Positions 1 through 63,300 of a DNA stretch of 64,000 nt are shown here, in pieces (positions within the stretch are counted from its first letter, which is position 1; every line of letters starts with the position of its first letter). Made by a program: the position numbers and the translations under genes. The notes beneath the pieces were generated by a model, which did no database searches, had not been told where the DNA came from, and saw only the letters and a program-made list of their open reading frames with translations. Source of the DNA: Klebsormidium nitens. Lineage: Eukaryota; Plantae; Klebsormidiophyceae. The DNA lies in contig DF237123.1 in assembly GCA_000708835.1 (NCBI GenBank), positions 1-64,000 on the forward strand, in the 5' to 3' direction.

Positions 1-1
1 A

Positions 2-1387
2 TCCCCGCGAGGGGCTCGGAAAGCTAGCGCCGTTACAGTAACTACACTGCACACTGCTCCAGAATATCAAAGACTCGCACTTTCAAAAGACGAACTCGCA
101 ACTCAACTTATAGACCAGATTTCCGGACTGGTCCATCACACACACCTCCACATGCTCTTCCAGAATGAAACGGCTGAACTCCCTTACTTCTACACCCTCC
201 CCAAACCTCATAAGACACCTATCGGATGGAGACCAGTTGCAGCCACGCATCGCTCCGTTCTCAGCTTGCCACAGCGACTCCTAACTCAAGCCCTTCACTT
301 AGTTATGCAAACTCTACGAGACTTTCATGCTGAAGAATTCAGAACGACTAAGATCCGTAAGTACTGGATCGTCGAAAACAGCTTAGACATCATCCTTTCA
401 CTCCCCGAAAATCTGGTCCACATGGTCTCATCAGATATCGAATCGATGTATCAAAAAATGGACCAGGCGAACGTAATAAACCAACTTCGAACTGAGGTTA
501 ACAGGGCTGCCTCGATTGCTGGCGCTGATTCTTTCTTTCTTGCTATCGGCAACACCAGCCTTGGCAACAGCATAGACAACGGATCTTGGTTTGATTGCAC
601 ATCAGGCCTCGACCCACTCACTAAAACTCTTCCCAGTGAAAAAGAATACTGCAGCAAAGGCGCAGTATATCCTATCCAAAATATCCTCAACATTTTAGAA
701 TTCCTAGTTAAGAACTCCTACGTGTCTCTAGGGACTGCAATCTTTCATCAGATCAACGGAATTCCGCAAGGAGGTCACTCCAGTGGCTTCCTCGCCAATC
801 TGACGTGCCACTCACATGAACGTCAGTGGGTAGAAAAATTTCCTTGGCACTCGCTTCAATACCTTATCTTCCGTTACATGGATGATTTTGGTATCACAAA
901 TGCAGAATATTTCCAAGATATGTACCGCGACATATATCCAGAAAGCACGGGTATCAAACTCATCCCAAATAAAGTTAAACCTCATCCTGAACGCCTTGTA
1001 CAGTGTAAACTTCTTGATACACTGATCTTCGTGGATCTTAACGGTAAAGTCCACGTCACTTTACACGACAAACGAGCTGATTATGACTTCTTCGTTAACC
1101 GATTTCCAGATATTGCATCAACTGCTTCCCTGCAACAGTCCATTTCTTCTTTTTACGGAGAGATCGTCAGGCTGTTTAGACTGAACACACACTTTGACGG
1201 CTTCTTTGACAATGTTGCTGACGTGGCAGCATACTTAATTCGCTCTAAAGGCTACCCTCAGAACGAATTACTCTCCACTTTCTCTAAATTTCTTGACACC
1301 CAAGTCTTCAATCCGAGACTCATGGGTAACAAGAAGGACTTGGAGCTCATCCTTCGTTACAACTTGAATCAAAAACTCAAAACCTGA
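2..1387 (+). CDS. Penelope-like element reverse transcriptase (5'-partial; frame open from base 2)
   Basis: LPYFYTLPKPHK...WRPV (RT1/2), SSDIESMY (motif A), long A-to-B' insertion, GIPQGGHSSGFLANL (B'), FRYMDDF (C), KLLD, and thumb LHDKRADYDF..RFP...SFYGEIVRLFR typical of PLE RTs. No C-terminal GIY-YIG domain. Confidence 0.9.
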   Translation, partial: SPRGARKASAVTVTTLHTAPEYQRLALSKDELATQLIDQISGLVHHTHLHMLFQNETAELPYFYTLPKPHKTPIGWRPVAATHRSVLSLPQRLLTQALHLVMQTLRDFHAEEFRTTKIRKYWIVENSLDIILSLPENLVHMVSSDIESMYQKMDQANVINQLRTEVNRAASIAGADSFFLAIGNTSLGNSIDNGSWFDCTSGLDPLTKTLPSEKEYCSKGAVYPIQNILNILEFLVKNSYVSLGTAIFHQINGIPQGGHSSGFLANLTCHSHERQWVEKFPWHSLQYLIFRYMDDFGITNAEYFQDMYRDIYPESTGIKLIPNKVKPHPERLVQCKLLDTLIFVDLNGKVHVTLHDKRADYDFFVNRFPDIASTASLQQSISSFYGEIVRLFRLNTHFDGFFDNVADVAAYLIRSKGYPQNELLSTFSKFLDTQVFNPRLMGNKKDLELILRYNLNQKLKT

Positions 1388-1417
1388 GTTTCCAATCCTC
1401 TATTTCACACAGGAACG

Positions 1418-4183
1418 ATGTTTCCCTACCCATACGCGCCCCCCGGTTATACGGTGATGACGTCAGCCATCCAACCACAACCCCTGCAGCAACCCGTCCA
1501 ACCTCCCTCAGCTCCGCCGCAACCGCCGCCCCAGTTCGTCTACGCTCAGCCGGTCCCAGCTCCCACCGTCCCGACACAGAATCCCGTCCAGACACTTCCC
1601 CCTCCCCCAGCCCCAATGCCCCCTCCTCAACCATTCTACCCCGTGACGCAATATTCTGCGCCTCAACCACAGGGGTACCCTAACCAAACTCCGGCTCAAC
1701 CAAACCCACCTCCCCAGCAGACATACACTCCACCCAATCCCCCGACCTACCACCAGAACCCCCCGCCTCCTGCTCAGTCCTACCCGCCTGCTCAGCCTAA
1801 CCCCCGCCCCGTGATTCACCATAGCCAACCTGTAAACCCCTCCAACGGTGGTTATCACAGACCCGGTCCGGGGTGGGAACCAGAACAGCAGAGGCAATGG
1901 GGTCATGATGCAGGATGGGAACGCGGACACGGAACGGGCAACAACGGAACCGGAACACAGGAATGGAACCGGAATACCCAGCCCCCAAACCCTCGAATTG
2001 AACTGTACCCGATGCAAACCCAGCACCGCACAGACTTCCCACCCCTAGCTCCACCGACGTCACGCCCTACGTATGCGCAACAGTTCCAACCTGCGCAACG
2101 GAACGATCAGTGGAACACGCGACGGACTCCTCCCAACGAGCCAGTAAACCCCCGCCCAGACGGTCCCCCGGGTGGTCCAGTGCGAAACCACCCACGTCAG
2201 CAGAATCCACGTGGCAGCACAACGCGCCCACAGAATAACCCGCCCTATGAAAAACCCGCAGCCAAACCCACCGTGTATAGGCAGTCGGTGATGCCGTACT
2301 TCACGACGGTTCAAGGGGAATTCACACAACTCTGCGTCAACACCGCCCAGGAGAAACCCTGCCCCGAACCCGGATGCAAATTCTCCCACGTGCCCAAAAC
2401 GGAAAGACCCTGCCCGGCCTTCCACACCCCAAAAGAGAAATGCCCATTCGACACACGCTGCCTACTCGGCCACGCAGAGGCCCGGGAAGCCGTTCGTCAA
2501 TCCAAGGCGTTCGCGCGTCACAAAGAGTGGCAGACACAAGTGAAGACCAATCCCGGAACCTACGGCGAAACCGACGCTGCAGAGTCTGGCACCGAAAAAA
2601 CCAACCCCCCCAAACCCATGGTCCCCGCGGAAGCAGTCAACACCGCTCCAGATAACACCCCGATTCCGACAACTCAGCAGATTCCGGCAGTCATGGTCAC
2701 ACCGGCTGCCGCAACCACCCCAGCAAACCCGGTTAACGCAACCCACGGGAAACCCTCCCAGGCAGAACCCACCCCCGGTACAGCCCCCCCGGTTAACTTC
2801 CAAGCCCTCGTTCAAGAAAACTCCCGACAAGGCCAAGAGGATGAGATGCGCCGCCTCGCCCTCCTCACCCAAGGCCTGCAGACCGACATGGAGAAGCTCA
2901 AGCAAACCCAGCAGGAGAAAGATAACCAGATGCGCTCGCTGCAGACGGCCATGGGGACGCTCCAGGCGGAGAACCAGACGCTGCAAGAGGAAAACGAACG
3001 TAAACTATCGCTTCTCGACTCTTCTTATCAAACGATCTTTGCTCGCTCGTCAAAAGCACGCCTGCTTTTAGACTTGAATATATCCGCTCCTTTGGAAACA
3101 GCTTTAGAAGGATTACTTGTCATCATTGCCACAATGTACTGCCGCCCACGTGAACTTGATGGGAATCACAATATGCTTGATCTTTTTGACTCACGACCCA
3201 CCACACGCTTCTCAGATGAAGTGTCGACATTACAATCATTAGGACTTAATCGAAGAAACGACGAACACGCGTTTTTTCTCACGTGCTATATGCGATTCCC
3301 AGTCGACTCCTCTTTTGTGACAAACGGCGTTGTCACACACGCGTCAGCAGTTGTCAGTCTGCCACCTGGAGGCGCCTGCCCACCGCGTGCGTCAGTTCTT
3401 AAAAAAGCTCCAAAACGGTTCAGAAAATTATTCTTCTCCCAATCTGAATCCCGCTTGGTAACTTCCGTGCCAAATTCGGACTTAAATCTCTCACAAACAG
3501 GCGGACTCTCTCAGCGCGAGACTTTACCCCCACAAATCCACCAACTCATCGCGAGGTTTTCTTACCAGGAAACCTACAAAAATCCCAACGTACCACTTAT
3601 ATCCCAGTTTATTCTGTACCAGCAGAACGAGTTACATCAGCTCGACTCATGTTTATTAAGATACCAGTCACCTGTTTACAAATCCTGCCCTCTGAAACTT
3701 CGACAATATAAAAATGGTCGCTCGGAAGTTGTCAAAAATACAGATCATCCCGCTTATGACAAGTGGGAATCTTTAATTAATCGAGTTCATTTTGATCCGG
3801 CTTACGCAACCACTCGGCTGACGTTTGGCTGGAAAGGATTCTATCTTCCTAAAGGCAAAATCTCTAGCCAAAGAGATAAATATGCTTTCTTTACGTTTGC
3901 TTACGTCACTGACCTCTTCCTCGGGGCGCTTCCACTATGGCCCATTGACGCTTCCTCTCAGTTTCAACTAGATCGGAAAGATCCGTTACGAGATTATACA
4001 ATCGATAATGTACGTTGGCTCAGTAAATCCGACAACATGGCTAACAAGCCATCCACTGGGAAACCAACAGGTTCTCAATTTCAAACCACTAAAGACGTCA
4101 TCAGGTTACTTCATTCCTGCGAACGGAATAACCTGATTACGTCCGAAATTCTCGGAGCGCTCACAAAAGGATATGGCACATAA
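1418..4183 (+). CDS. 921-aa ORF: Pro/Gln-rich disordered N-terminus, two CCCH zinc fingers, coiled coil, C-terminal phage-like HNH (His-Me finger) domain
   Basis: Uninterrupted ORF. C-x8-C-x4-C-x3-H and C-x9-C-x5-C-x3-H; heptad-like LTQGLQTDMEKLKQ...LQAENQTLQEENER; HPAYDKWESLINRV...FQLDRKDPLRDYTIDNVRWLSKSDNMANK. Confidence 0.8.
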   Translation: MFPYPYAPPGYTVMTSAIQPQPLQQPVQPPSAPPQPPPQFVYAQPVPAPTVPTQNPVQTLPPPPAPMPPPQPFYPVTQYSAPQPQGYPNQTPAQPNPPPQQTYTPPNPPTYHQNPPPPAQSYPPAQPNPRPVIHHSQPVNPSNGGYHRPGPGWEPEQQRQWGHDAGWERGHGTGNNGTGTQEWNRNTQPPNPRIELYPMQTQHRTDFPPLAPPTSRPTYAQQFQPAQRNDQWNTRRTPPNEPVNPRPDGPPGGPVRNHPRQQNPRGSTTRPQNNPPYEKPAAKPTVYRQSVMPYFTTVQGEFTQLCVNTAQEKPCPEPGCKFSHVPKTERPCPAFHTPKEKCPFDTRCLLGHAEAREAVRQSKAFARHKEWQTQVKTNPGTYGETDAAESGTEKTNPPKPMVPAEAVNTAPDNTPIPTTQQIPAVMVTPAAATTPANPVNATHGKPSQAEPTPGTAPPVNFQALVQENSRQGQEDEMRRLALLTQGLQTDMEKLKQTQQEKDNQMRSLQTAMGTLQAENQTLQEENERKLSLLDSSYQTIFARSSKARLLLDLNISAPLETALEGLLVIIATMYCRPRELDGNHNMLDLFDSRPTTRFSDEVSTLQSLGLNRRNDEHAFFLTCYMRFPVDSSFVTNGVVTHASAVVSLPPGGACPPRASVLKKAPKRFRKLFFSQSESRLVTSVPNSDLNLSQTGGLSQRETLPPQIHQLIARFSYQETYKNPNVPLISQFILYQQNELHQLDSCLLRYQSPVYKSCPLKLRQYKNGRSEVVKNTDHPAYDKWESLINRVHFDPAYATTRLTFGWKGFYLPKGKISSQRDKYAFFTFAYVTDLFLGALPLWPIDASSQFQLDRKDPLRDYTIDNVRWLSKSDNMANKPSTGKPTGSQFQTTKDVIRLLHSCERNNLITSEILGALTKGYGT

Positions 4184-4517
4184 CTTTTCCTCTCTGATGG
4201 GTCCTAAGTTGCATCGCAACAATAGGACGGGTGGTGGCGGGCCATTAGAAACCACATATTTACGTTCGCATTACAAAGTCAAAAAACCAATAATCTTTCA
4301 CTTCTTCTACCACCTCGTGTACTAACATGCACGACTGACAAGTCGAACTCAAAACTCACTGAATTTTCACCTTTAAAATTCAAACGAAAATAAGTGGTTT
4401 CTAATGCAATTCAGAAACCACACCTTCGTTTTGATGCAATAATTCGAGAATTAATTCACACCTGCTTACCTTCAATTGAAGGATACCTGCAGACTTCTCT
4501 ATCTTCTCAATCTTCAG

Positions 4518-4735
4518 GCCTTCAGGCCCTGCTCGCCAAAGCTCCGACAGACGGTGTGAAAACCCCTCAATGCCCTAAGACACGCCAGCACAACAAGAAG
4601 CACTCACAGAACGGGTCCGCCAACACGTCCGCGGCCGCCAACGCGATTTCCAACGCGTCGGCAGCGGACGCGACAACGGCGGCGGCCGCGTCCAACAATG
4701 ACGCGCCAGGTCCAGGTGTATGTTTAAACCCTTGA
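4518..4735 (+). CDS. Probable terminal exon of the spliced isoform of the CCCH/coiled-coil protein (joined to 2999)
   Basis: Pyrimidine tract and CAG at 4515-4517. Phase matches donor C|GTAAAC at 2999/3000, giving EENE-R-LQALLAK. GC rises from ~38% (4441-4500) to ~57-70% (4521-4580, 4621-4680). Confidence 0.55.
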
Positions 4736-5018
4736 TTTCAAACTCCTGGTCACGGAACTTGAAATCGACGGTCAGACCTAGGCCGAACTAATCCGAGTCA
4801 GCTCAACTATGCCACGTCACCTAGTTTCCGTTCAAACTTGACCGCTGCTTGACCTCCGCGAAGACTGACGATGCTTCACGCTTCGTCAAGCATCCATTCT
4901 TTCTGCTTCGCGAGACAGAGCAGAAATGCTTTGCAGTCACACTATCAGCAGTCAAAGCGCAGAGGCGCTTCCTCCTCAAGATTGCTAGCAAAAAGGCACG
5001 AGATAGCGACGCACGACA

Positions 5019-5342
5019 GGGGGCTGGGCCAGAAGTCGACCAGTTCTGAGCTTTCTACGAAGATCTTCCGTATTGGGTTTTCTGACTCTGGCCGCAGCCA
5101 CTGAAGTCTATTTGCAGGTTCAAGACTGACAACCTTTTCTCTCTCGTCATCTCTCAGGTATGACCTCCTATCCCCCAGGCACGAAGATCCTGATTAATGC
5201 GGAAGCTTTGCGGAAAGCGGGAAAACTGATTTGAATCTATGCGTGATGCTAAGCTTGCTTGTGATTCTGATGCATAAGACTAGACTATGCATACATAGGG
5301 TTTGGTTTCTGCCTCTCATGTTTCACTTCTGGCCCAGCCCCC
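5019..5342. mobile_element. MITE-like segment bounded by a perfect 18-bp inverted repeat
   Basis: GGGGGCTGGGCCAGAAGT at 5019-5036 and its exact reverse complement at 5325-5342. No target-site duplication is evident. Confidence 0.4.
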
Positions 5343-8300
5343 AAGTTAGAGTCACCTCATAGATGAACTTTAGGTCCTACAGTAGCGGTGTCGGATTTCC
5401 ACATCCAATCCGGACAATTACAAAGACAGCATTTCTAAATAAGACGGCAGGCCTCAAGTCTTTCATTCATACAGTTCAGATTGTTCATACATGATTGCAT
5501 GGTACATGGGTTTGTCTCAAATTCATCTCATTTTTTGTCAAGATGGGGATAGGATGACGAGAAGGGAAGGGCTGTCAACTCAGTTCCCATTTTGTCCAGT
5601 CACCACCCTACTCTTGCATCATTGCCTTCCTATTGCATGAAGATTCTGAAATATTTGGGGACAGGAAGGCAGAGCGGATCATCTCGTGCCGTATAAATCG
5701 AGAAGATACATGTGTTAGCATTAGATTGGAGTGCTTGCAACATGGATCTAGCTTGTGCTGCTTTATACTCGGAGCTGCCGCCCAATCACAGTCGATCGGG
5801 CAAGTCAGTCCGACTTGCTCCGGAAATCAAGTAACTTCTCTCCGACATTCAATGATTAAATTTCGGAAAAGGGGTCGCCGGGCCGCCGGGCCGCCGCAGG
5901 AGTGCGGCGGGACGGTTGCGGTGACCGTCAAAGAGCGCAGCGGTACCTACCTTCTGCGCCTTCACCAACGTACTTCACTGACTCACTCTTACACATGCTG
6001 CCTAGCAGGTACGTACCGCCGAGCGACACGCCAATATGCATGATGGCGCAACCGTCGCCGTCGCTCGGGGAACAGCCCCTGGCCTAGGTCTGATCTGGAT
6101 TTAGCTGTGACTCGTGTCAATTATTGATTTGGATCCTGTCAACAATAATAGCAAAATTTCAGGCCCCTCTTTCAGGCCCTTTCGGAGCGCCATGATTTTG
6201 GCAGCTCGATTGACAGGGGATTGACAAGGCTGTGACCGACTTGGCATGCATGTTTGAACGTACATATCAGAACCAGACCAAACAGAGCTGCGTTAGACAT
6301 GCATGCAGGGGGGATGCACTCCGAGTCTGCATGGAGGCTGAAGCCTAGGGTAGGTCTTCTGCCAAATTAGGTAGTATTATACCTATGTACATACCTAGTA
6401 CCTATACAGGATACGACGGTGAATTTACCGGTAGTAGGTATGGGTGCATGAGTTCATGACTACCGTAGGCCATAGTAGGGGCAATAATATTTACCTGCCC
6501 TGAAAACCTTTATCCGGAAAGAAACAAGGCACCAGACTTTTCGGCGACTGACTGCTCTCCCCTTCTACGATCACGGCGAGATTAAGGTGGACGATATTAT
6601 GCGGATTTGGCTGGATCTATCACGCAATTGCCACATGGGCACACTAGATTGCGCAAGCCATGACGTCAGGTGAACTTAATGTGTGACACGCATGAGGTCG
6701 CGAATCCCGAATGATGACGTACTCAGGAGATATTTGGAGCACTTTTTGCACTTTTTCGGTCCCCCGGCGAGTGCTCAGAGCACTTTCCCGTGCACATAAG
6801 GCTGTGCCGGAATGCTGGAACCTGCCCGAGCTAGGGCCAAAGCCGAAGAAAACCTCTGGCTCGGCCAACTCTACCGGGTTCAGCGAATCTTACCAGCATG
6901 AGCTGCTTTTGCCAGCAACACGGTACAGGGCGATCACCAATATTCTCGTCAGTACCTCCGCGCTTCATAGACAATGTTCAGAAGAAGCCCGGCGTGGTTA
7001 GCTGATCTCCAAGATACGCCGTACGAAACACCCAGGCTGAGACCGTACCAGACCCGTACCAGATAGCTCCCTGAAAGTTCTGCCTATCTTTGAGCGAAAT
7101 GTAGTGACGAACACTGACGTGTTTGTCCCGAGCTGCCCCGAGCTAAGGTATGTATTAAAACACGTACTACAGATCAGATACGTTGCAGGCTTAATATGGT
7201 TTCAGGCCAGCCACCACTTTTAGGTAAGTGCAGAACAACAGTACTGGTGCACTGATCGTGCAAAGCTGGAGCCCCGCTCAGTGGAGCCTGGGACTTACCT
7301 ACATGCTTGATGCGTGGCCGGACCATCCATTTTCCGAGTGACGCACTCATCACCTCAGATAGACTTCTTTGTCGTGTACATGCTTCTTGTGTAGGTAGAG
7401 CCGTGCTACATCAGTAGTATCACACGTTCTGCTAGTACACGTACTGCTACATACGTTTACACCAGTGGTAGGGTATGTATATATTCGGGTACTGGTATCC
7501 TTTGCAGACTGCCAGTGAAGCGCTACTGATCAGCTCGGGCTACGTAGCCTCTAGCATGGAGTTCTCTCATTGCTGTCTGCAGGAACCTGATTCGAATCGT
7601 TGACGGCGCAGGTGTTACCTGTATTTCCTGTGACCATGACTGGAAGGCTCCTGAAAGCTCCTACCTAATCTGCAAGTGATACTATATCTGAGTCAATTGA
7701 GTCAATCCATCACTGAATGATGCCGAACTAGCAATGGGAGTAATTTCAGCTCTAGTGCACTGCCCCTGTGACCTGTCAGCTTGAATGTCGTGGCTGCACG
7801 CCATATTCACAGCTGCACATCAAATTCACAGCTGCACGTCCAAAAATATGAAGAGATTACATCAGCTTGCTAGCACATTGAGCACTGCGTTACCATCTGT
7901 TTACGCATACGATCTTATGGAGGCGATGCTGCTCTCAAAAATCCTGGATGCATAGCTAAAATTGGAGAGCTTCTGTATCAATGAGGGCGGGTCGATCGGG
8001 CATTGTCCCTTGTCGGAAATATCCTGAGCCGACTGTACAAGATTCATCAACGTACAGATTACTAGTTCATCGAAGGCTGCTCGTATCGTCCTTGCTTGTG
8101 CGGGAGTCACTTGAAACCTACGGGCAAAGTACAGATTCCTTGGAGCTCCGGATTTGATGGCCACCCTTCTCTGGCCGCGAGCTTGAAGTTTTCTCAAGCT
8201 CGTTCGGTTAACCCCGACAGAATCTAGTGCCAGAGTTCTGAGCTTCAATGACTGCCTGCAAAAGCTGGCCGTACCAGACCGAACCGATCTGTCTGGTCGT

Positions 8301-34649: not shown

Positions 34650-37600
34650 CTACTCGTCCGCAGCGTCGGCCTCAGCCTTGTCATCCTGCACGCAAGCCCA
34701 GAATCAAAGCTGTGAAACTGGAAAAGGAACGACCTTGATATCCACAGCTCGGAGTCGGACAGCCCCTGGTTGGATCCCAGACAGCCCACTTGACAGAACT
34801 AGTATTCTGAAAGTGTTAAAACTTCCCTGCCTAACCCTTGTACGTACTTCGACCGTTGTGACGCAGAAACCGGATGTGCAACTTGGGTGCGAACACTTCC
34901 TTTCTTATGCTCGATGGTACTTCATTTGTAAGCCCAGATATTCAGTCACAATGTAGCCTTGCGTCTAGCCTGTTTCGTAAAACACTGGGGGCATCAGCCC
35001 GTGTCCCACGTCCGGATTTGAACGGACCAGACCGCCAGCAGGCATCGACGTCCAGTCGCACAGCCCAGCAAGCAAGCGGTGAGACACTCAACCTCCAACT
35101 GTCTTGAGGCACAGAAGTCCGGCGATGTTGCAACACAAGCGCCACACTGATTTCGCAGGATCCATATTGATGAGACAGGAAGAACAGTCATTCTCCCATG
35201 CGCGCTCTCAATTCACAAGGCTGTTAGACTCACCTCTTTTGCAGTTTCCTCTTCGGCCTCGTCTTCTTTTTCCTCGGCGCCTTCTTCGTCGGCGTCTTTC
35301 CCCTCCTCTTCTTTCTCGTCTCCATCTTCTTTCTCGTCCCCCTCTTCCTGAGCGTCTTTCATTTCCTCGTCCTGTAAAAACGAAGTTCCCAACGTCACTC
35401 TCGGATGCAAACAACTTCAAAAGGCTCAGAAGCGCTGAAATTCAGATAAAAGGTAAGGCCGACACATGGCCCCTCATTTGACAACAACAAAAAGGGCCAA
35501 AAAGGGCCAGCCATCGAATTAGAGGAGTTGCGCGGATCCGCAACGCAATCTATCGATAGAAAGCAACTAGAGGCGGATACTGGGTGATATTACTTAGCTG
35601 GATTTTTGTCTGGGTCTCCGCTTTGACAAAGAAACCTGGATCGAGAACAGGTTCACATTGTTCGGCCTCTGTAGAGCGCAAGAAACCGTCTGACTGCCAC
35701 CGTTTTGTGAAGTCACCTGTTTGCTATTTCTATTACCTCAATCAATCTCCGCAAGTCTATTGTGCCCAGTATATATATTGTCAAATCGCGTGGGACTTAA
35801 TGCCGACAGAACACAACACGCTCCCTGGTTCGAACAACAACTTGACCGGGGCTCTTGACACACGCATCCAACACAAACGACGTGTCAACGGCGCTTCGAA
35901 CCCCCATTCCGCAGAAACCAATCAGCAGGTTCTCAAACTTTGAAACTCTGTACGAATGTTGCAGCAAATGGGACAAACTCCAGCTCGTTGCCACGCTTTC
36001 CACCTCACCTCATCATCCTTATCCTCGTCATCGTTTTCTTCATTCTTTCCTTCGTCCTCCTCTTCTTCCTTCTCTTCGTCTTCATCTTCTTCTTCTTCCT
36101 CATCTTCTTCCTCCTCTTCCTTCTTCTTGGCCTTCTTCGACTTTCTAGACGTTTTCGACTTCTTCTTGGGCGGCTCCTCGTCCGACTCCTCCTCCTCGGA
36201 CGCACTCGCCGCCTCTTCCTCTTCCTCGGATTCGGACTCTTCTACCTCCACCTTCTTCTTCTTCTCCTTCGTCTGCAAGGAAATCAAGTAGATTCTTGTT
36301 TACATTCTGAGATTGGAATTCGAGCAATGCGTCTCTCATAGTTATGAGTCCGGATGTTTTTGAACGCGCTCGGAGCCTCTTCTTCCTCGGCTTCGCACTC
36401 TTCCACCTCCACCTTCTTCTCCTTCGCCTGCACAAGATTTAAGTCGAAGCTCGGTACGCATTCTGAACTTCGATTCTCAAAGCTTTTGCACCTCCACCTT
36501 CTTCTTCTTCTCCTTCGCCTGCGCGAAAGAGTTTTTCATTCGAGAGTCGACGTTCAAAAATAAGATGTTTAAGCAGTTATCGTCGTGATCTTGCTACGTC
36601 TAAACACCTCAATCGCGCTCGCCGCTTTTTCTGCTTCGCCGCTTCTTCCTCCACCTTTCCTTTTTCTCCCACGCCTGCACAATCCTCATTCAATTTTGGA
36701 TCTTCCAGCATTTTCCCATCCTAAAGCTTGATTCTGAGTTAGCCGACACAATCGCCGCCTCTCATCGTATTCAGATTCCTCCGACCTGGACTTCACGTTT
36801 CTCCGCTTCGCCTTCATAATTCTCTGATGCATGTTTAGTTCGTACCTGTTATCTTCTTCAAGCCATTTGTCAATTGCAAGGTCCTACAAATCATCTGGCG
36901 AACATGGGCGTCCGTGAACCCAATATCGCATCGTTTTGCCGCTACCTGGCTTGCATGCCAATACAGTTGGCCGACCTCGGAAGACTCAATTCGGTCACAC
37001 TTGCGCCTAAGTCGGTTCTATAAAACCACACACTACTTTCTTGGACCAATTAACCGCCCAGGATAGCCCCTCCCGCAGTCCAGACCGTAGAAAAACGCGG
37101 ATCACGTTCAATTTGAAGTGCTTTGACACAGTTGCGCTTGAGAAACTCGCGTAGAGCGTAGCTGAGCGAATCACCTACGAGACCAGCGAACCTGAGCAGA
37201 ATTTCACGATAAGGAGCAACAAACAACTCAAGGAAACAGCCTCACCTTCTTCTTCTCCTTCTTCTTCCGCTTCTCCTCCTTTTCCTTCTCCTTCTTTTTC
37301 GACTTCTTCTCTTCCTTCTCCTTCTTTTCCGTTTTCTTGGAAACTTTCTTCACTTCCTTCTTTGACTTCTTCTTTGGGGGCTCTTCGACCTCTTCTTCCG
37401 ATTCGTCATCGTCCTCTTCCTGCGAATGAAATGACAGAAGTTGGCAAATAAGAGTGTGAAAGTCGACGGGGAACTAAACGAAAGCTGATCAGAATGAAGC
37501 TTGCTTATAATGGTAAAGCGTGCACTGGAACTTTGGGCGGCTCTTCCCTACTCTTTTCAACAGTTTCGGTCGCTTGGAACAGATCCAAAAGGTAAGTGTT

Positions 37601-40600: not shown

Positions 40601-42308
40601 TACTCCCTGATAAGTGCCACCCGAGTGTATAACACAGGGTACGTTTTCTGTCTGCAGGCTGCTGGCTTTCTGACAAGCTGACAAGGGACCTGAGTCGACG
40701 ACAAATCAAATCCTCACCTTTCCTCTCCGCTTGAACATGATCATGTGAGCTTGGCTCAGGATCTCGTCAGACCTTGTCAGCTTGGACAGCTTGAAAGCAA
40801 CTGTAGGAAGGACATGGAGTAAGACCATGGTAGAGGAAAATCTGATCTAGGTCAGATGCTGTCAATGCAAGGTTCACTTGCATTGTTCCAAGCGTCCCAG
40901 ATCCCTGTAACATGCAGCGAACAAAGGCTTACAAAAGCAAGGTTTCCTGAAATTGGAAAGTTTGAAAGAATGTTGCAGTTGGGATTCTACGAGTTGTTTT
41001 CTCAGGCCTCTTTCTCTAAAGACAATCCGTTTCTCTCTCAGGAACAAGGTGGTTGCAGAAATACAGGAGTCCAGAGCCTCACCATTTGGGATGTCCTTCA
41101 GAGGTTTACCCTTGCCCTGGAAGCAAGAAAAGATACACCACGTTGATTCTCCTGTGCAACCTTTATCTTCCAAGCCCTAGCTCACCGCAACAGAATTCAA
41201 AAGAATCAAATAGAAGTTGGAGTGCTGGAAGTTGTGAGAGTGTGAAGGGACACCTCAAGGAGAGGGACACTGGAGCATGTCACAGAAACAGAGGGACGGC
41301 ATTACTTCCAGAGGTTATGTAGACACGTCAACGAGCAACTGCTGAATTAAAAGAGAAAGGTGGCAGCTTGCATCAGAATGTAAGCTAACAAATAGAAGTG
41401 GGAAGATTTAAGGGGACATCTAAGATAAACATGCATGCATGCATTGCAAGTTCCTGGCTTACGCTTTCCACTAGTAAAGCTTCAGTGGATCTATGTTAAC
41501 ATGGCTGACACTCTGAACCCAGATTGTGGAGTCTGCGCATATGCTCGACATTACGGCCATTGGCACTGATTGGCTGTATGGTAGTGAAATGAACCTGAGG
41601 AGGACAGTTTGCCAGCCGCAACTCAACTCCCCGGCTACACTCTTAGGGGAATTTGGCCTTGTGACCAATGCAAGCCAAGCGGTCCCCTATCAGAAAGCCG
41701 GAGCGCCCCTACCAGAGGGGAGTGCCGGAATAAAATCGCTGCACTGATTGGCGGTCTCTGAGGTTTGAGCAACCCACCTTCTTGATGACGATTTCAATCT
41801 CCTGCTTGGGCTCCCCAACTGTCAGCCGCTGCACTTCTTTCCGTTCTCTGGTCGGCCTCGACCGCTCCACCGGCGCCGCCGCCTCCCTGGGCCGCTTTGC
41901 TCCTTTCTTTTTCTCTGTCTTCTCCTCCTCCTCTTGCTTCTTTTCCTTCTTCTCCTCTGCCTTCTCTTCCGGCTTCTTTTCGGTCTTTTTCTCTGCTTTC
42001 TTTTCAGTCTTCTTCTCCGCCTTCTCTACCTGCTTCTTTTCAGTCTTACTCTCTACCTTCTCAATCTTCTTTTCCGGCTTCTTGTCTTCCTTCTTCTCTT
42101 TCTTCTCCTCTTTCTTCTCTGCCTTCTCTTCCGGCTTCTTATCCTCTTTCTTCTCTGGCTTCTTCTCAGTCTTCGTTTCTGCCTTCTTGTCCGCTTTCTT
42201 TTCCGCCTTCTTCTCTTCCTTCTTCTCTGTTGGTGCTTGTGTCACCTCTACTGCTGGAGCCGTGTCCTTCTCCTGTGTCAGAGCGAGAGCTTCGGTGGTG
42301 GTAGCCAT
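34650..42308 (-). CDS. DEK: DEK-like chromatin protein (multi-exon) with KE-rich N-terminus and long acidic/basic tail
   Basis: Exons give ERSRPTRERKEVQRL, GKGKPLKDIPNVAFKLSKL, LHMIMF-like AHMIMFKRRGK, ELKKHIQEFSGFVF, LNQLLDFLDLPTKGTK and FEFLEKPH, which match the DEK central/SAP region. Last exon DDKAEADAADE* at 34685-34650. Confidence 0.8.
36272..36680 (-). repeat. Four tandem copies of a splice acceptor plus exon start in the DEK-like gene
   Basis: (t/c)gcag|(a/g)cgaaggagaagaag... begins at 36272, 36427, 36518 and (degenerate) 36674. Confidence 0.8.
41920..42230 (-). repeat. EKK/KAEKK low-complexity coding repeat
   Basis: KKEEKKAEKKADKKAETKTEKKPEKK... inside the first DEK coding exon. 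Confidence 0.85.
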
Positions 42309-52581: not shown

Positions 52582-53748
52582 ATGATGGAGGTAGTCAGCT
52601 TGGAATCAAGTTTGGCCCTTGCGCCTCCAGAAGTCTTAGATATTGCAGAGAAGGTGCGCAAAGCCTGCCCGAAGAGCTTTCAGGCGCTCGAAAATACAAG
52701 CAGAGCTTTCCGGGGCTCTGCAAGAAGGTGCACCAAGTCTCTGGTTGTGAAACCCTCAAGCGAGGCTGGAAGGCAGACAGCGCTAGAACTAGAGGAAGAA
52801 AGCAGGAACACCTTTGCGCATCCCTGTGCGCAACTCTTGGAGGAAATCAGGAAGCGACCGGGCCTCGTTAAGCTGGTCATGATGGAGCCAAGTAACTTTG
52901 AGTGGCGCCCAAGGCCTTCGATCTTGGCAGCCCTGAGCATCACTCCTTGGATGAAGTGCAAGGTCATCGGAGACAAGAAGACCCTCCACGAGCCGAATGA
53001 CATTACGGGAGAGTACGCACTAGCTCCCTGGAAGGGATCCTATGGCGAGCGTGCGCTGAGCAACTCAAAAGCAACCCTCAGAAAGCTGAGTTTGACCAGC
53101 TTTGATTTTGATGTCACTGAGTCGAAGCTTTCAGAAACGATCCAAGGGTTCCCATTCCTTACTTCTTTGAAACTTGGAGGCTACGGACTGATAGGCAGCT
53201 CATTGGCGCACGAAAATCTGGTGAAGCTGGAAGTTTCTGATCTTTCGACCGGCCCGTCCGCTGTGGAACTGGTTCAGCTAATCTCCAGCACATCCGCTGT
53301 TCCTCCAAATTTAGTCTGGAGGCTGCCTAAACTGCGAAGCCTGAGGGCGCCAGCTTGTTGCTCTATGAGCGAAGCAAGCTACGAAATCCTACTGCTGAGT
53401 TCACTCTCCGCCTGCCGTTCCTTACCTTTGAATCTTCAGAATCTTGAGCTCATTTTGCAGTTATCTGTGCGAATCAGGGGTTGGCTTGGGCCCTCCGTTG
53501 ATCGGTTCTTTGTTCACATGCTGGAGATCTCTGATTGCCCTCTGCTTCGGTCCATCTGCGTGCGCATGGGCGAGTCAGAGAGAGCCTCAGAGATGAGCGC
53601 GGAACGGGTCCAACTTCTGTTTGCTGCGGAAGTCGCGCGGATGTTCACTGTGTCTCCTCAACTCGAGGAGGTAAGGTTTGAACGGAGCAACGGCGAAGAG
53701 ATGGTAAAATGGGAGCGGACACCCCGGGTCCTGGGAGCCGGAGTGTAG
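52582..53748 (+). CDS. F-box-like / LRR (RNI-like) protein, single coding exon
   Basis: N-terminal LAPPEVLDIAEKV...LENTSRAFR F-box-like motif; LRKLSL, LTSLKL, LVKLEV, LPKLRSLRA and LQNLEL LRR-like units. Confidence 0.6.
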   Translation: MMEVVSLESSLALAPPEVLDIAEKVRKACPKSFQALENTSRAFRGSARRCTKSLVVKPSSEAGRQTALELEEESRNTFAHPCAQLLEEIRKRPGLVKLVMMEPSNFEWRPRPSILAALSITPWMKCKVIGDKKTLHEPNDITGEYALAPWKGSYGERALSNSKATLRKLSLTSFDFDVTESKLSETIQGFPFLTSLKLGGYGLIGSSLAHENLVKLEVSDLSTGPSAVELVQLISSTSAVPPNLVWRLPKLRSLRAPACCSMSEASYEILLLSSLSACRSLPLNLQNLELILQLSVRIRGWLGPSVDRFFVHMLEISDCPLLRSICVRMGESERASEMSAERVQLLFAAEVARMFTVSPQLEEVRFERSNGEEMVKWERTPRVLGAGV

Positions 53749-55197: not shown

Positions 55198-55854
55198 ATG
55201 GAGACAGTCTGCTCCGAACCAGAAATGGCCCTTCCTCCACCGGAGATCCTAGACATCATCACAGAGAAGGTGCGAAAAGACTGCCCGAAGAGCTTTCAGG
55301 CGCTCGAAAGTACCAGCAGAGCGTTCCGGGACTCGGCAAGAAGACTCACTAAGTCTCTGGTTGTGACTCCTTCCAACGAAAGGGAAACAAATACAGAGCC
55401 AGAACCAAAGGAAGGGTGCAGCACGTCCGGGCGTCCTTGTTGGCGACTCCTGGAGGAGTTCAAGAAGCGTCCGGGCCTCTCTAAGCTGGTTGTGATAGAG
55501 CCAAATACCTCGGAGTGGCGGCGCGGGTCTTCGACTTTGAGAGCTCTGTGCAGCATTTCGTGGGTGAAGTGCAAGGGTATTGGCTTCGAGACGCCTCTAG
55601 AAGAGCCGGATGTCCTTATGAGAGACTATTCAAAATCTATGTGGGCGGGATCGTCTCCGTGGGTGGGATCGTACTGCGAGCGCGCGCTGATCAATTCCCA
55701 ATTCAGCCTTCGAAAGCTGACTCTGACCAGCTACGATTTCGATATCTGTGATGAGGAGCAGTTTTTAGAAACGATCCCACGGTATCTTCGCTACGAGTGG
55801 AACGGCAAAGTGCACTCTGTAAGGTGGGGCGAGGAGAGACGTCCTGCCAAATGA
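55198..55854 (+). pseudogene. Truncated tandem paralogue of the F-box-like/LRR gene
   Basis: Clearly similar to the 52582 protein (CPKSFQALE.TSRAFR.SARR.TKSLVV; YCERALINSQFSLRKLTLTSYDFD) up to ETIP, then unrelated sequence and a stop. Confidence 0.65.
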
Positions 55855-60300: not shown

Positions 60301-63300
60301 ATGCAACGTCTGAAAACAAAGCTCCAAGGGCATTCATATTCCGGTTTTTTGAGAGGTACGAAGCAAGGGTCGGGGAATCCAGAGTCGATGTCCAAAAGTT
60401 GGACGTTCGAGGTTTGAGATTTGATTCGCGGCGTTTGCGGCCCAGAGCTACAGGTGATTCCAATGCTAGATACGATTGTGAAAAGCAGCACAGAACAAAC
60501 GAAACTTGATTGATTCGGGTAAGGCGCTGACCTGCTTTCCGCAGCTTTTTGATGTCTTTGATGAGTTTCTGTGCCCGTGCAACCGGGTACTCCCCAGGCA
60601 GATCCCCCTTGCCTCCGTGCCTGTTCACATCGGCCTTCTGGTCCATCATCTCCCGGTAGTACTTTCGCTCCTGCAGAATATTATGTGAATAAGTTCTTTT
60701 AGCAACGCCGCTGGTATCTGTGCAGAATATGTGCAGGGAGAAATGAGAGATCGTTAGTCGGTCCCCATCTAAAAAGAAGACCCGGAAGAAGGGCGATCGA
60801 TCCGCCAGACACCAACCAAAGCCACCAGGGCTGACGTCAGCTTAACCTCCCAAAAGATACCTTTGTCATTGAGCAGCGCACGCAAGAGGGGTCTAAACTC
60901 CCACTGCATTGCAATGGAAATGCAGGAAAACATAACACACTCAATATTCGAAGTAAGAAGAGAGAGGCGGAAGAGAAGAGGCGCTAACCCCACCTTGACC
61001 ATCCGCGACTTGATTCCGTCATCGTACAGCGCCTGCGAGAGCGCCACGAGGCGCTTGGCCAGAAACTGGTACACAAAGTTGACCGCTGTTGTCACGATGC
61101 CCAGGCCGTGCGTGTTGATCCCATTGGCGATGTTGCGGACTTGAACCGTGTGTAAGTACTTGCGCCGGCGGGCGGCAGACGGCCGTTCTATGAATACCTG
61201 CAACATAACTCCGCATGCTTAATAACAATGAGTAAGGTGTTTCCTCTTCCGCTTCTCCATTCCCTGTTGAGAATCGTTGCTTGGATCTTTCAACGGGATC
61301 CTGCAAACAATCACTAGGCCGTGCGTGTTGATCCCGTTAAGGACGTTGCGGACTTGGACCGTGTGCAGGTACTTGCGCCAACGAGCTGCGGACGGCCGCT
61401 CTATGAAAACCTGCAAAGTAATTAACTTTTCTGTTTGAAAGATTCAGAGTGATACCGGTGTCTTACTTCCAATTTCCGCTGTCAGGGATTGCTGATACCC
61501 TTTTTCAAGCTGATCATGTGAGAACGATGTTGCAAACGCCGGCGGGCAGCCGCCGGCCGTTCTATGTACACCCGCAAAGAAAAGTAAGCATGCTTTATAA
61601 ATCATAACAGTAATTGGGATTGTTTCCCCTCCTCGCCTTCCCCTTTTCTCCTTTCCCCTGCTAAGAATCGTTGCTTGAAATTTTCAACGGGATCCTGCAA
61701 ACAATCTCTAATGCGTATTCACGCCTTTGGCGATACTGCGGACTTGGACCCTGTGCAGGTACTGGCGCCGGCGGGCTGCGGACGTCCGCTCTACAAAAAC
61801 CTGCGAAGCGGCTCGAAGTCGGATTAGAAAACTGTGTGCGTTGAGGCAGAAGCTGGTCTTCTTTTATTATCGTGTATACTTCGTTTCCAATGTTGCCCGC
61901 TCTACGTGTGCATATGATATGGGACTCTGCGGCAATCGGGCGGGAGGAGAAGACTTGCAAGAAGAGCTACGCTCTTCTTCTATGTCGCCTTGCATTTTCC
62001 TGTCCTCTTACTCTTCGAACGATGCGCGCCCCGCCGTTTCTTTGTTCTCGTTTTCTTTCACCTGTATCACTCCTCCTTCCTTATGGTCCTTTTTCCAAGT
62101 CATCTCGTCTTTCCTCTTGTCCTCGTCGATTGGTAACCGCCGTTTCCACAGGTTTCAAGCTTGAAATCCTTTTCATTGGTTCCCTTGATTGTTCTTCTAT
62201 CCCTCCGCTCTTATTTTTCTGTGCTCCGCCCTTCTCAACATTTTTCTCTCTCCCAATTATCTGCGCCGACCCTACTCACCATCACTGTCAAGTGCGACAA
62301 CGCTTTTGGCCTCCGTTTTATTGCTCGTCTTGCAAAGGGTGGACCTGGCCAGCACATCCCGAGGTTCATACAAAGCAGTACTTGAAGTTCCGCCTATTTT
62401 CTGCAAAGATGAGGGTCAGGGGTATTCTCACCTGGCCATTCAGGTCGTACGTGTACTGCTGCGCGAGGGTGTGAATATTCCGCATGAGGAACAAGACGTC
62501 CTGTCCGTGCTCCAAGTTCTGAGGGGGCAGGTGGATGTCGTCTAAACGGAGGCCGTATTTGTCCTGGAAAACAGCAAATGAGAAGCGATAAGAGGGCTTG
62601 TCTTGCGATGCTAAGCAAGTTGGCAAAAGAAGCCAAGCTGTGATGAAGAGGAGACAATGGCTGCCGAAATGAAATGAGCACCAGCGGTACTAGTATTGAT
62701 GGCCCGATTCCCGAGGAGGACAGAATCAGGAAGAGACCAAGAAAGGAGCGGCAGGGATAAGACAAGAGCGCTTGTTGAAAAGTGGGACGTCCTGACGTCA
62801 GGTTGTAGATTGGACGTAATGAGAATTCTTTTTGAAGAGCACGACCGAGACAATAAAGAACCGTTCATGAAACAGATCAGTGCAAGCGTCGACGGGAGGA
62901 CGAGAAAGCGATGAACAAGGCACCTATGAATGGGAGAAGGGCGGGTAGAGAAACAGGGGTGAATAGAGAAGCCTGTCAATTGCAAAAGAGGTGTGAGAAG
63001 TAAATGACAAGAAGAATACGTCACTGAAGCAGCGTCTCACCTGTGCCAGCTGTCGCATGTCGCTGTAAGCTTTCCAGTTGTGCAGCGCAACCGCGGTGTG
63101 ATCGTAAAACGCGGCGTTCAAATACGCCTCTAACCGCTCCTTAACCACGATGGTTTGCGACCCTAACCGGATGGGGCGCATGCTCAGGAAGCAGGACAGG
63201 TCCCTAACCCCGGTCCGGGTTGGGTCAAGCGTGACCGCGCCGGTTAGGGTGTGGGAATGGTTGTGGAGGCGGAGGTCGGTCTCGATTGCGTGACACAGTG

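Follow-up and report, generated by a model that had tools for sequence, protein, structure and literature searches.

Penelope-like retroelements (PLEs) are defined either by a telomerase-like reverse transcriptase (RT) joined to a GIY-YIG endonuclease, or by a nuclease-free life at telomeres. The locus described here raises the question of how to understand a PLE-type RT that carries no GIY-YIG domain and is followed on the same strand by a second open reading frame (ORF2), whose C-terminus resembles bacteriophage proteins annotated as HNH endonucleases. Are the two ORFs parts of one element, and could the phage-like domain do the work of the missing endonuclease? Positions 1 to ~5770 of the window (the whole 64,000-nucleotide stretch of DNA analysed) are the 3′ four-fifths of a bicistronic PLE, the 5′ end of this copy lying beyond the left edge of the sequence. 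On balance, and by a modest margin, we favor the fuller explanation that the HNH-like domain of ORF2 stands in for the lost GIY-YIG. The features on which the argument rests are as follows:

2 to 1387, + strand: RT ORF, 5′-truncated by the window edge, frame 2; matches RVT_1 with E 7e-7
197-214, + strand: LPKPHK motif of the RT
428-451, + strand: RT motif A, SSDIESMY
755-775, + strand: RT motif B′, NGIPQGG
872-889, + strand: RT RYMDDF (YMDD) motif
1388 to 1417, + strand: inter-ORF spacer of 30 nt, in frame, with no further stop codon
1418 to 4183, + strand: ORF2, 921 aa, intact, in the same frame as the RT ORF
1418 to 2317, + strand: Pro/Gln-rich low-complexity N-terminal region of ORF2 (aa 1-300; 27% P, 13% Q)
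2333 to 2473, + strand: two CCCH zinc-finger patterns of ORF2 (aa 306-324 and 332-352)
2816 to 3022, + strand: probable coiled coil of ORF2 (aa ~467-535), a heptad-like Q/E/L/K stretch
3038 to 3697, + strand: conserved middle domain of ORF2, fold unknown (aa 541-760), with many invariant columns
3725 to 4135, + strand: HNH-like C-terminal domain of ORF2, with phage homology
4192 to 4250, + strand: conserved structured RNA motif directly 3′ of ORF2, in 7 of the 8 loci examined
4251 to 5770, + strand: 3′ tail, the region forming the pseudo-LTR in related copies

A Penelope-like RT that lacks GIY-YIG

The RT ORF ends in a TGA stop codon at 1385-1387 and represents approximately residues 241-702 of the full-length 702-aa protein P0001, that is, its 3′ two-thirds, with 93% identity across residues 253-702. 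When the RT was used in a profile search, 3790 matches were recovered, the best of which outside the close family were proteins of 800-1100 aa with GIY-YIG at the N-terminus and RT at the C-terminus; this GIY-YIG plus RT architecture was present in 51 of the 83 non-family matches of at least 550 aa. A tree split the 12 endonuclease-less RTs from all GIY-YIG PLEs by a branch with 100% support. Because the tree lacks reference sequences for Naiad, Chlamys, PLE-X, Athena and TERT, it is unrooted and clade names are given by domain architecture and motifs. The alignment places the CxC, KGPxFRE, DK and PKxHK motifs as invariant across both the endonuclease-less family and the GIY-YIG PLEs, with C104 and C106 of CxC unchanged in the element family and six GIY-YIG PLEs, and D235 and K236 of the DK motif likewise invariant. 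On these grounds of architecture and motifs, the RT is Penelope-like and groups with the Naiad/Chlamys PLEs. A PDB sequence search with the RT profile returned nothing meaningful.

A first-pass annotation, made from the sequence alone, had described a PLE-type RT with a long insertion between motifs A and B′ and no C-terminal GIY-YIG. The PLE assignment held; the distance from the motif A Asp to the motif B′ Gln is 111 residues, which is long, without a quantitative comparison to reference PLEs. The absence of GIY-YIG also held, and extends throughout the element. No Pfam GIY-YIG match was found in P0001 or its N-terminus, and a clade-specific GIY-YIG HMM, which detects 43 non-seed PLE proteins, gave no match when all six frames of the window and of nine loci were scanned. 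For the part of the protein lying left of the window, full-length relatives have CxC and no GIY-YIG. The full-length RT ORF, at 702 aa, begins ~100 aa ahead of the CxC motif, and no CxCX1-8C-type Cys cluster occurs in those ~100 residues.

A second ORF that travels with the RT

As the first-pass annotation had proposed, a 921-aa ORF2 begins 30 nt after the RT. The spacer has the same length (30 nt) in L001; in other relatives it measures 50 nt or 12 nt, or gives way to a 1-nt UGAUG overlap. The order RT then ORF2 recurs in L001, L002, L004 and L005/L006, four independent diverged copies, and again in the two deep relatives L007 and L008. In L002 and L004, both ORFs lie between direct repeats (pseudo-LTRs) of 1.2-1.5 kb that are 96-99% identical; the corresponding 5′ side of the window copy falls outside the sequence. 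L008 is a head-to-tail unit of 5371 bp.

A first objection is that chance alone has put ORF2 beside a PLE RT, as a host gene or as a nested element of unrelated origin. In its favor, L003 contains ORF2 without an upstream RT. Against it, the order and short spacer repeat in at least six independent loci, some with only 25-31% RT identity, and the direct repeats enclose both ORFs. L003 itself is explained as a 5′-truncated copy, broken within 26 nt of the ORF2 start, and ORF2 fragments are multi-copy: the 152-aa C-terminus, used as a query, recovered only fragments belonging to this element family. RT and ORF2 co-occur in multiple copies, ORF2 is not a neighboring host gene, and the chance reading is all but excluded. 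The possibility that these are enzymes encoded inside introns of a spliced gene was also rejected, since each is a long, uninterrupted ORF and the element occurs in multiple copies.

Every lineage sampled keeps RT and ORF2 together, and strong purifying selection acts on both. The dN/dS of the RT is 0.064, and that of ORF2 is 0.15 against L001 and 0.10 against L003. Within ORF2, values are 0.15-0.20 for the Pro/Gln-rich region, 0.04-0.06 for the CCCH region and 0.06-0.09 for the middle domain. The strongest constraint in the element falls on the HNH-like domain, at 0.019-0.036. Two intact ORFs under purifying selection could also describe a domesticated, non-mobile rvt-like gene cluster. This alternative is very unlikely: diverged and fragmented copies number in the dozens and are spread over different contigs, related copies have pseudo-LTRs and head-to-tail units, L003 is 5′-truncated, and contig depth increases toward the 3′ end in the source run.

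The 38 RT-related proteins recovered bear on where these elements reside. Most of the JGI ones are on contigs of ~9-230 kb, and the four copies inspected all sit beside ordinary-looking genes. Related copies are dispersed and interstitial, inside gene-bearing contigs rather than at their ends. Downstream of the element the window continues with 58 kb of other DNA, and telomeric repeats were found nowhere in the window, those 58 kb included.

Domain organization of ORF2

The Pro/Gln-rich region of ORF2 is confined to the closest relatives. Downstream of it, the first CCCH pattern is C-x8-C-x4-C-x3-H (2333-2389) and the second C-x9-C-x5-C-x3-H (2411-2473), both fitting a C-x7-9-C-x4-5-C-x3-H spacing that is kept in P0043-P0045. 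Pfam support is weak (zf-CCCH_DUS3L, E 0.006, under the curated cut-off). The coiled coil is based on weak matches to Macoilin and YabA and on a heptad-like stretch in all homologues, with no dedicated predictor applied, and is given as probable. The middle domain has no match in Pfam, NCBIfam, the Atlas feature search or the fold searches. The first-pass annotation had claimed two CCCH fingers, a coiled coil and a C-terminal HNH-like domain: the fingers held as patterns, the coiled coil as probable, and the HNH-like domain by its homology to phage proteins annotated HNH.

The HNH-like domain

The core of the C-terminal domain, QLDRKD...ANKPS, lies at 3965-4054, with the motif QLDRKD..Y..N.RW...N.AN. 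Four PHROG families annotated as HNH endonuclease match the ORF2 C-terminus (E 1.6e-6 to 3e-5). A BLASTP comparison of the domain with gp064 of Staphylococcus phage MCE-2014 gave E 1e-11, and a tblastn search against 140 phage records gave a best E of 2e-4. An Atlas feature search, taken as a lead only, found the C-terminus to resemble small phage proteins (score 0.91-0.92). No Pfam HNH model and no NCBIfam entry matched, leaving PHROGs and direct phage comparison as the only routes by which the domain is recognized. These comparisons establish homology between the C-terminal domain of ORF2 and phage proteins of the I-HmuI-like kind that carry an HNH endonuclease annotation. An earlier proposal of a second, bacteriophage-like nuclease fold held in its phage homology; the word "second" failed, because the full-length ORF has no GIY-YIG and the HNH-like domain is the only nuclease-like domain of the element.

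Whether the domain cuts DNA is less certain. The position of the canonical catalytic His (D-H or H-H, where strand 1 ends) is occupied by Arg in 26 of 27 element sequences, the exception being Lys in P0211, and by Arg in all four aligned phage homologues; because of this replacement, nuclease activity is unproven. Of the other residues, N864 (the strand 2 Asn) is invariant, and W867 and the downstream D/N-N are nearly so. The window copy has Asp at aa 859 in place of the otherwise near-invariant His of an "HY" dipeptide, and may therefore itself be defective.

Structural evidence does not resolve the matter. A PDB sequence search with the ORF2 C-terminal profile found nothing meaningful, and by that search this HNH-like subfamily has no solved structure. 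AlphaFold models of ORF2 540-921 and 760-921 reached a pLDDT of only 54.5 and 57.6, with two short strands at the HNH-like motif and no confident helix after them. No significant match came from Foldseek against PDB or BFVD, or from VIA-align wide, the queries being these poor models; the failed fold searches are uninformative and no evidence against an HNH fold. With no solved structure found, poor models and no fold matches, nuclease fold and activity rest on sequence homology only.

A rival explanation that remains possible is that the HNH-like domain is dead as a catalyst and serves as a module for DNA binding or targeting, and that the element uses no nuclease of its own. Integration would then occur at breaks, at replication intermediates, or at a nick borrowed from the host or another element; nuclease-free integration of such kinds has been proposed for endonuclease-less PLEs. 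The substitution of the catalytic His in all members and all phage homologues supports this view, as do the AP2 DNA-binding domains annotated in some phage homologues and the lack of fold confirmation. Against it, the putative metal ligands (the L-D-R Asp, the N.RW Asn and the next-helix Asn) are invariant or nearly so, no other part of the element is as constrained as this domain, and a His in the hairpin loop, kept across three deep PLE lineages, could act as base. The dispersal of copies in gene-bearing contigs, away from their ends, also speaks against a dead module.

Element boundary and a conserved RNA motif

The first-pass annotation had placed the element on a single A/C-skewed strand and ended it at 4770. 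The skew held when measured over the window, with a GC skew of -0.17 to -0.38 across 1-5000 that is ~0 again by ~5500. The end point failed, and lies ~1 kb further 3′, at ~5770, where L001 1-29 matches window 5742-5770 and the sequences diverge beyond, marking the element/host junction. Similarity to L003 extends at least as far as 5343, and contig depth stays high up to ~5800, with loose ends at 5716 and 5767. The final ~200 nt of the 3′ tail correspond by homology to the leader found at the 5′ end of related copies.

In the structured motif between ORF2 and the 3′ tail, an outer and an inner stem are combined with a hairpin that varies and with a G-run, GGGTGGTGGCGGG at 4229-4241, that is invariant. 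Its stems are paired in 85% of cells versus 31-57% in slid controls, with 4 compensatory pairs, and the pseudo-LTRs begin just past the G-run. No hammerhead or other known ribozyme was found by Rfam in the window or five loci at E up to 10. Metagenome matches to the motif pattern, at least 120 in number, were set aside as chance, none of them encoding RT or ORF2. The position of this G-rich motif at the pseudo-LTR start may mark an RNA processing site or a stop for reverse transcription, and the motif is a compact candidate for a new functional RNA.

Proposed mechanism

We infer that a single transcript carries both RT and ORF2, although transcription has not been shown; the RNA-labelled runs of the species contained none of this stretch, providing no expression evidence either way. 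From this transcript, ORF2 would be translated by termination-reinitiation over the very short gap between the ORFs (50 nt at most, and down to a 1-nt overlap). Fusion of the two ORFs by stop-codon readthrough was rejected. They are in frame here and in L001, and out of frame in L002 and L008, while L007 carries a second in-frame stop; readthrough is therefore not a conserved mechanism. Once translated, the CCCH fingers of ORF2 may bind element RNA and the coiled coil may oligomerize, giving ORF2 a putative ORF1p-like role in a ribonucleoprotein. The acquisition of an ORF1p/Gag-like protein, suggested at the outset, is retained in this ORF1p-like form as an inference. The HNH-like domain would then bind and nick chromosomal DNA, yielding a 3′-OH for target-primed reverse transcription, and would thereby replace the lost GIY-YIG.

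A bolder reading is also compatible with the evidence, and we hold it as falling slightly short of probable. Here, the element would represent the first PLE lineage in which GIY-YIG has been swapped for a phage-derived His-Me/HNH-type nuclease, carried on a downstream ORF1p-like RNA-binding protein. The G-rich motif behind ORF2 would then be a new element for RNA processing or for stopping reverse transcription, one that sets the pseudo-LTR boundary in place of the hammerhead ribozyme of canonical PLEs.

Significance

Dispersed PLEs with another nuclease-like module on a second ORF would constitute a third lifestyle, beside the two by which PLEs are defined. Endonuclease exchange occurs among LINEs (APE versus RLE) and is, to our knowledge, not known among PLEs, of which this element would be a clear case of modular exchange. 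The HNH-like ORF2 may explain genome-wide insertion by "nuclease-less" PLEs; the bolder reading, if true, answers how endonuclease-less Chlamys-type PLEs integrate genome-wide, and the element makes the integration question left open by the 2021 Naiad/Chlamys paper of Craig, Yushenova, Rodriguez and Arkhipova (PMC8557442) directly testable. The L-D-R-x-D variant of HNH is widespread in phages and annotated as endonuclease despite having no canonical His, and a retroelement depending on it provides a selectable readout of the role of this subfamily.

Comparison with known systems

By profile search the RT is nearest to the Chlamys/Naiad PLEs, with which it has in common the CxC, DK, KGPxF/YRE and PKxHK motifs, a pseudo-LTR or tandem structure, a probable streptophyte-alga host, and the absence of a hammerhead ribozyme, Naiad and Chlamys elements having none either according to PMC8557442. 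Its long spacing between motifs A and B′, at the IFD position, may be a further common feature. It differs in layout: Chlamys/Naiad elements have one ORF with an N-terminal GIY-YIG, while the present element has two ORFs and no GIY-YIG. That paper reports a CCCH/coiled-coil/HNH-like second ORF in none of the Chlamys or Naiad families, and no description of an RT combined with such an ORF2 was found in the searchable literature.

The endonuclease-less Chlamys group "PLE-X" is similar in keeping CxC, in having lost GIY-YIG and in belonging to the green lineage. Its hosts are Chara, Selaginella and mosses, and in Chara PLE-X is genome-wide with no identified endonuclease (PMC8557442); for this genome-wide distribution the integration route was left open (PMC8557442, section 9). 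For PLE-X, hammerhead ribozymes of the canonical type and an extended N-terminus bearing CxCX1-8C are described, and an ORF2 is not (PMC8557442); neither the ribozymes nor such an extension was found in the present element.

The Athena/Terminon elements are likewise PLEs without GIY-YIG that carry accessory ORFs, including coiled-coil proteins. In bdelloid rotifers these elements are telomere-associated, with reverse-complement telomeric repeats (also fig. 1 legend, PMC8557442), and their canonical layout places a coiled-coil ORF before the RT. The present copies, in contrast, are interstitial, and their ORF2 follows the RT and bears an HNH-like domain.

Among the phage L-D-R-x-D proteins, MCE-2014 gp064 and Pseudomonas phage PAK_P4 gp161 share the domain with ORF2 over ~130 residues, with the common pattern HP.Y..W..R ... 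G..P ... LDR.D...Y...N.RW...N..N. The phage homologues are small, stand-alone or AP2-fused, and have an N-terminal Cys cluster, whereas in ORF2 the domain forms the end of a eukaryotic retroelement protein of 921 aa and carries one more conserved His (HY).

Finally, a purely functional analogy may be drawn with LINE ORF1p/ORF2p and with group II intron RT-En proteins, in which an RNA-binding or oligomerizing protein, an RT and a nuclease serve target-primed reverse transcription. LINE-1 is bicistronic with unconventional translation of its ORF2, and in group II intron proteins the En domain is of the HNH type. In the present element, however, the RT comes first, the nuclease-like domain is on the putative RNA-binding protein and not on the RT, and the RT clades are unrelated.

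Architecture and recurrence of the two-ORF unit

The element is real and its architecture solid, with an RT ORF followed on the same strand by ORF2, the second protein, and by a structured motif.

Features of the element in the window
Upstream of window to 1387, + strand, frame 2: RT ORF, 5′ end outside the window, TGA stop at 1385-1387; motifs LPKPHK, SSDIESMY, NGIPQGG and RYMDDF
1418-4183, + strand, same frame: ORF2, 921 aa, 30 nt past the RT stop
ORF2, first 300 residues: Pro/Gln-rich region
ORF2, aa 306-324 and 332-352: two CCCH patterns
ORF2, aa ~467-535: Q/E/L-rich heptad-like stretch, weak matches to coiled-coil families
ORF2, between that stretch and the C-terminal motif: conserved middle region
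ORF2, C-terminus: motif QLDRKD..Y..N.RW...N.AN
4192-4250, + strand: structured motif, ~60 nt, directly 3′ of the ORF2 stop

The first-pass annotation had proposed this layout of RT, 30-nt spacer and 921-aa ORF2 with CCCH fingers, coiled coil and HNH-like motif; ORF, motif and Pfam evidence upholds it, as well as the A/C strand skew, the RVT_1 match to the RT fragment being borderline (E 7e-7). Public data hold 38 relatives of this fragment, with full-length forms of ~702 aa, and the contig of the closest, locus L001 (93% identity), has the whole RT ORF, an identical 30-nt spacer and the same ORF2. Searching with both proteins (tblastn) recovers RT then ORF2 at L001, L002, L004 and L005/L006 (RT identity 62-66%), and the same order is found in the deep relatives L007 (an NCBI assembly) and L008 at 31% RT identity, where the ORF2 C-terminal motifs read IDRID..HYITGNCRW and VDRYN..HYTIDNVRW. 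At L002 and L004 both ORFs lie between direct repeats (1.2-1.5 kb, 96-99% identity); these repeats are pseudo-LTRs, a typical PLE feature. The annotation would have been refuted had RT copies never carried ORF2, or had ORF2 been a host gene joined by chance insertion; neither is the case, because the RT-ORF2 order recurs across these six loci and pseudo-LTRs enclose both ORFs. L003 carries ORF2 without an RT; it is a truncated copy whose break lies no more than 26 nt from where ORF2 begins. The two ends of the L008 contig (1-136 and 5372-5507) overlap, matching each other at 99% identity. The unit so delimited is 5371 bp long, comprises RT, ORF2 and a spacer of 885 bp, and could come from a head-to-tail tandem array or from a circular molecule.

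Both proteins are under selective constraint: compared with L001, the RT has a dN/dS of 0.064 and ORF2 one of 0.15. For the parts of ORF2 the values are 0.06 (CCCH region), 0.09 (middle domain) and 0.036 (HNH-like domain; 0.019 against L003), so that the HNH-like domain is constrained no less than the RT, which fits an essential role in propagation.

The RT and its relationship to GIY-YIG elements

Nine family members supplied an RT profile, which returned 3790 hits from a set of 1.84 billion representative proteins. The best outside the close family are proteins of 800-1100 aa with a C-terminal RT match, and eight of nine sampled from this class have an N-terminal Pfam GIY-YIG domain, the usual PLE endonuclease. 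An HMM made from those domains detects it in 51 of 83 non-family hits of at least 550 aa; shorter hits have the look of truncated gene calls. N-terminal GIY-YIG with C-terminal RT is the Naiad/Chlamys architecture (Craig et al., 2021, PMC8557442), and alignment of the N-terminal regions shows CxC, KGPxF/YRE, DK and PKxHK to be invariant between these elements and the RT family studied here. Reading leftwards through full-length relatives, in place of the contig extension that the first-pass annotation had suggested, recovers CxC and, in L002 and L004, pseudo-LTRs, and no GIY-YIG, which is absent from the 702-aa RT ORF and from every frame of the window and nine loci. The proposed RT phylogeny was also run (maximum likelihood), as an unrooted tree without reference Naiad, Chlamys, Athena or Penelope sequences: a branch with 100% support splits 12 endonuclease-less RTs (the element's RT family, L007, L008 and two metagenomic sequences) from all GIY-YIG elements. 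No hammerhead ribozyme was found in the window or related loci, a lack shared with Naiad and Chlamys. Precomputed Pfam annotation places PF28514 (DUF8422) in several RT homologues among P0003, P0004, P0007, P0009 and P0012; this family is newer than the Pfam release used here, and may already cover part of the RT ORF.

The HNH-like domain of ORF2

Pfam and NCBIfam do not recognise the ORF2 C-terminal domain. Four PHROG families annotated as HNH endonuclease match it (E 1.6e-6 to 3e-5), tblastn with the domain reaches 140 phage genomes (best E 2e-4, covering 86% of the domain), and gp064 of Staphylococcus phage MCE-2014 aligns pairwise with it at E 1e-11, the common core being QLDRKD...NY..NCRW..SEN..N.PS. 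Aligning the element, four phage proteins and the deep PLE relatives leaves Pro, Arg, Gly, Pro, Asp-Arg, Tyr, Asn and Arg-Trp invariant. The motif aligns with the D-H-K-D...N-L-R-W...N core of I-HmuI, the His of which is replaced by Arg in 26 of the 27 element sequences (Lys in the related protein P0211) and in all four phage homologues. The PLE proteins have an extra His, in an HY dipeptide conserved in all three deep lineages. Of 27 related sequences, deep relatives among them, 26 have His at the position of ORF2 aa 859 (window 3992-3994), beside the HNH-like core. The window copy alone has Asp there, and might be functionally impaired despite its intact ORFs. Two AlphaFold models of C-terminal parts of ORF2 were poor and fold searches gave no match. 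Of the bacteriophage-like nuclease fold first proposed, the phage homology held; fold and activity remain inferred from sequence homology, with Arg for the core His; a nuclease function is plausible and unproven.

The structured motif and the 3′ end

The motif behind ORF2 occurs once in seven of eight loci, though the proteins diverge by 60-65%.

Structured motif at other loci
L002: 14750-14817
L003: 7454-7513
L004: 11848-11912
L005: 12020-12085
L136: ~1970-2030
L138: ~4566-4625

It comprises an outer stem (UGAUGNG...CAUCA), a covarying inner stem (GUCC/GGAC, GCCC/GGGC, GUCC/GGGC), a variable hairpin and the invariant CGGGUGGNGGNGGG, with the invariant G-run CGGGTGGNGGNGGG. Under this structure the paired fraction of cells is 85%, compared with 31-57% for slid controls; four pairs show compensatory change, and no Rfam family matched. 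The upstream pseudo-LTRs of L002 and L004 each start 2-3 nt past the G-run, too exactly for random 5′ truncation; by inference, the motif could be a processing site or a G-quadruplex reverse-transcription stop.

The end at 4770 first assigned to the element failed. We place it at ~5770, because similarity to L003 reaches at least 5343, the ~200 nt upstream of 5770 align to the 5′ leaders of L001, L002 and L004, window 5742-5770 equals L001 bases 1-29 with divergence beyond, and contig depth in the probable source run peaks between 5200 and 5800, where loose ends occur at 5716 and 5767.

The tail also holds a perfect 17-nt inverted repeat (5020-5036 and 5327-5343, arms ~300 nt apart), with arms identical in L003 (8129-8141 and 8426-8438) and a region folding z of -3.75; it may have a structural role in the tail, or its arms may be the termini of a miniature transposon nested there. 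A 113-aa ORF (4394-4735), with a 108-aa L003 counterpart sharing a 39-residue core at 69% identity, matches no family and may be a small third ORF or merely conserved non-coding sequence. Run X5 (2018, same species) differs from window 1-6000 by 177 G>A and 53 C>T, with other differences almost absent; this resembles bisulfite conversion, and element methylation might in principle be readable from it.

Elsewhere in the window, long imperfect CTT/CTC-rich repeats (+ strand, 35233-37385 and 41869-42259), whose - strand would translate into runs rich in Glu and Lys, are probably low-complexity coding parts of host genes. A two-copy direct repeat of 160 nt (52646-52805 and 55262-55421; 80% identity, 2.6 kb apart) and a three-copy, 115-nt family (61094-61811) are also present.

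Proposed mechanism and comparison with known elements

The domain layout, RT-ORF2 linkage, direct repeats and selective constraint are shown by the data; the steps that follow are inferred. We propose that a single RNA would bear both ORFs, with ORF2 translated by reinitiation. RT-ORF2 spacers range from -1 to 50 nt, and in L008 the RT stop overlaps the ORF2 start (TGATG; UGAUG in RNA). Conserved stop-codon readthrough is disfavoured, since the two ORFs share a frame in some lineages only. The CCCH fingers and coiled coil may form an RNA-binding oligomer, and target-primed reverse transcription would start at a nick made in the target by the HNH-like domain. Copies are scattered within gene-bearing contigs (an XS-domain gene adjoins one) and telomeric repeats are absent from the window, a pattern in favour of a lifestyle that depends on a nuclease. 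The main alternative, in which the HNH-like domain only binds DNA without cutting it, is less favoured than the nuclease reading.

The literature searched (TE databases were not covered) holds no description of a PLE with an RT and an HNH-bearing ORF2, in Klebsormidium or elsewhere, and the element is probably an undescribed variant of the PLE class. Endonuclease-less PLE-X families are known within Chlamys, their means of integration being stated as unknown (Craig et al., 2021, PMC8557442). Both the hammerhead ribozymes and the N-terminal, Cys-rich extension described for PLE-X are missing here, and no ORF2 has been reported for those families, whereas the element studied here has one.
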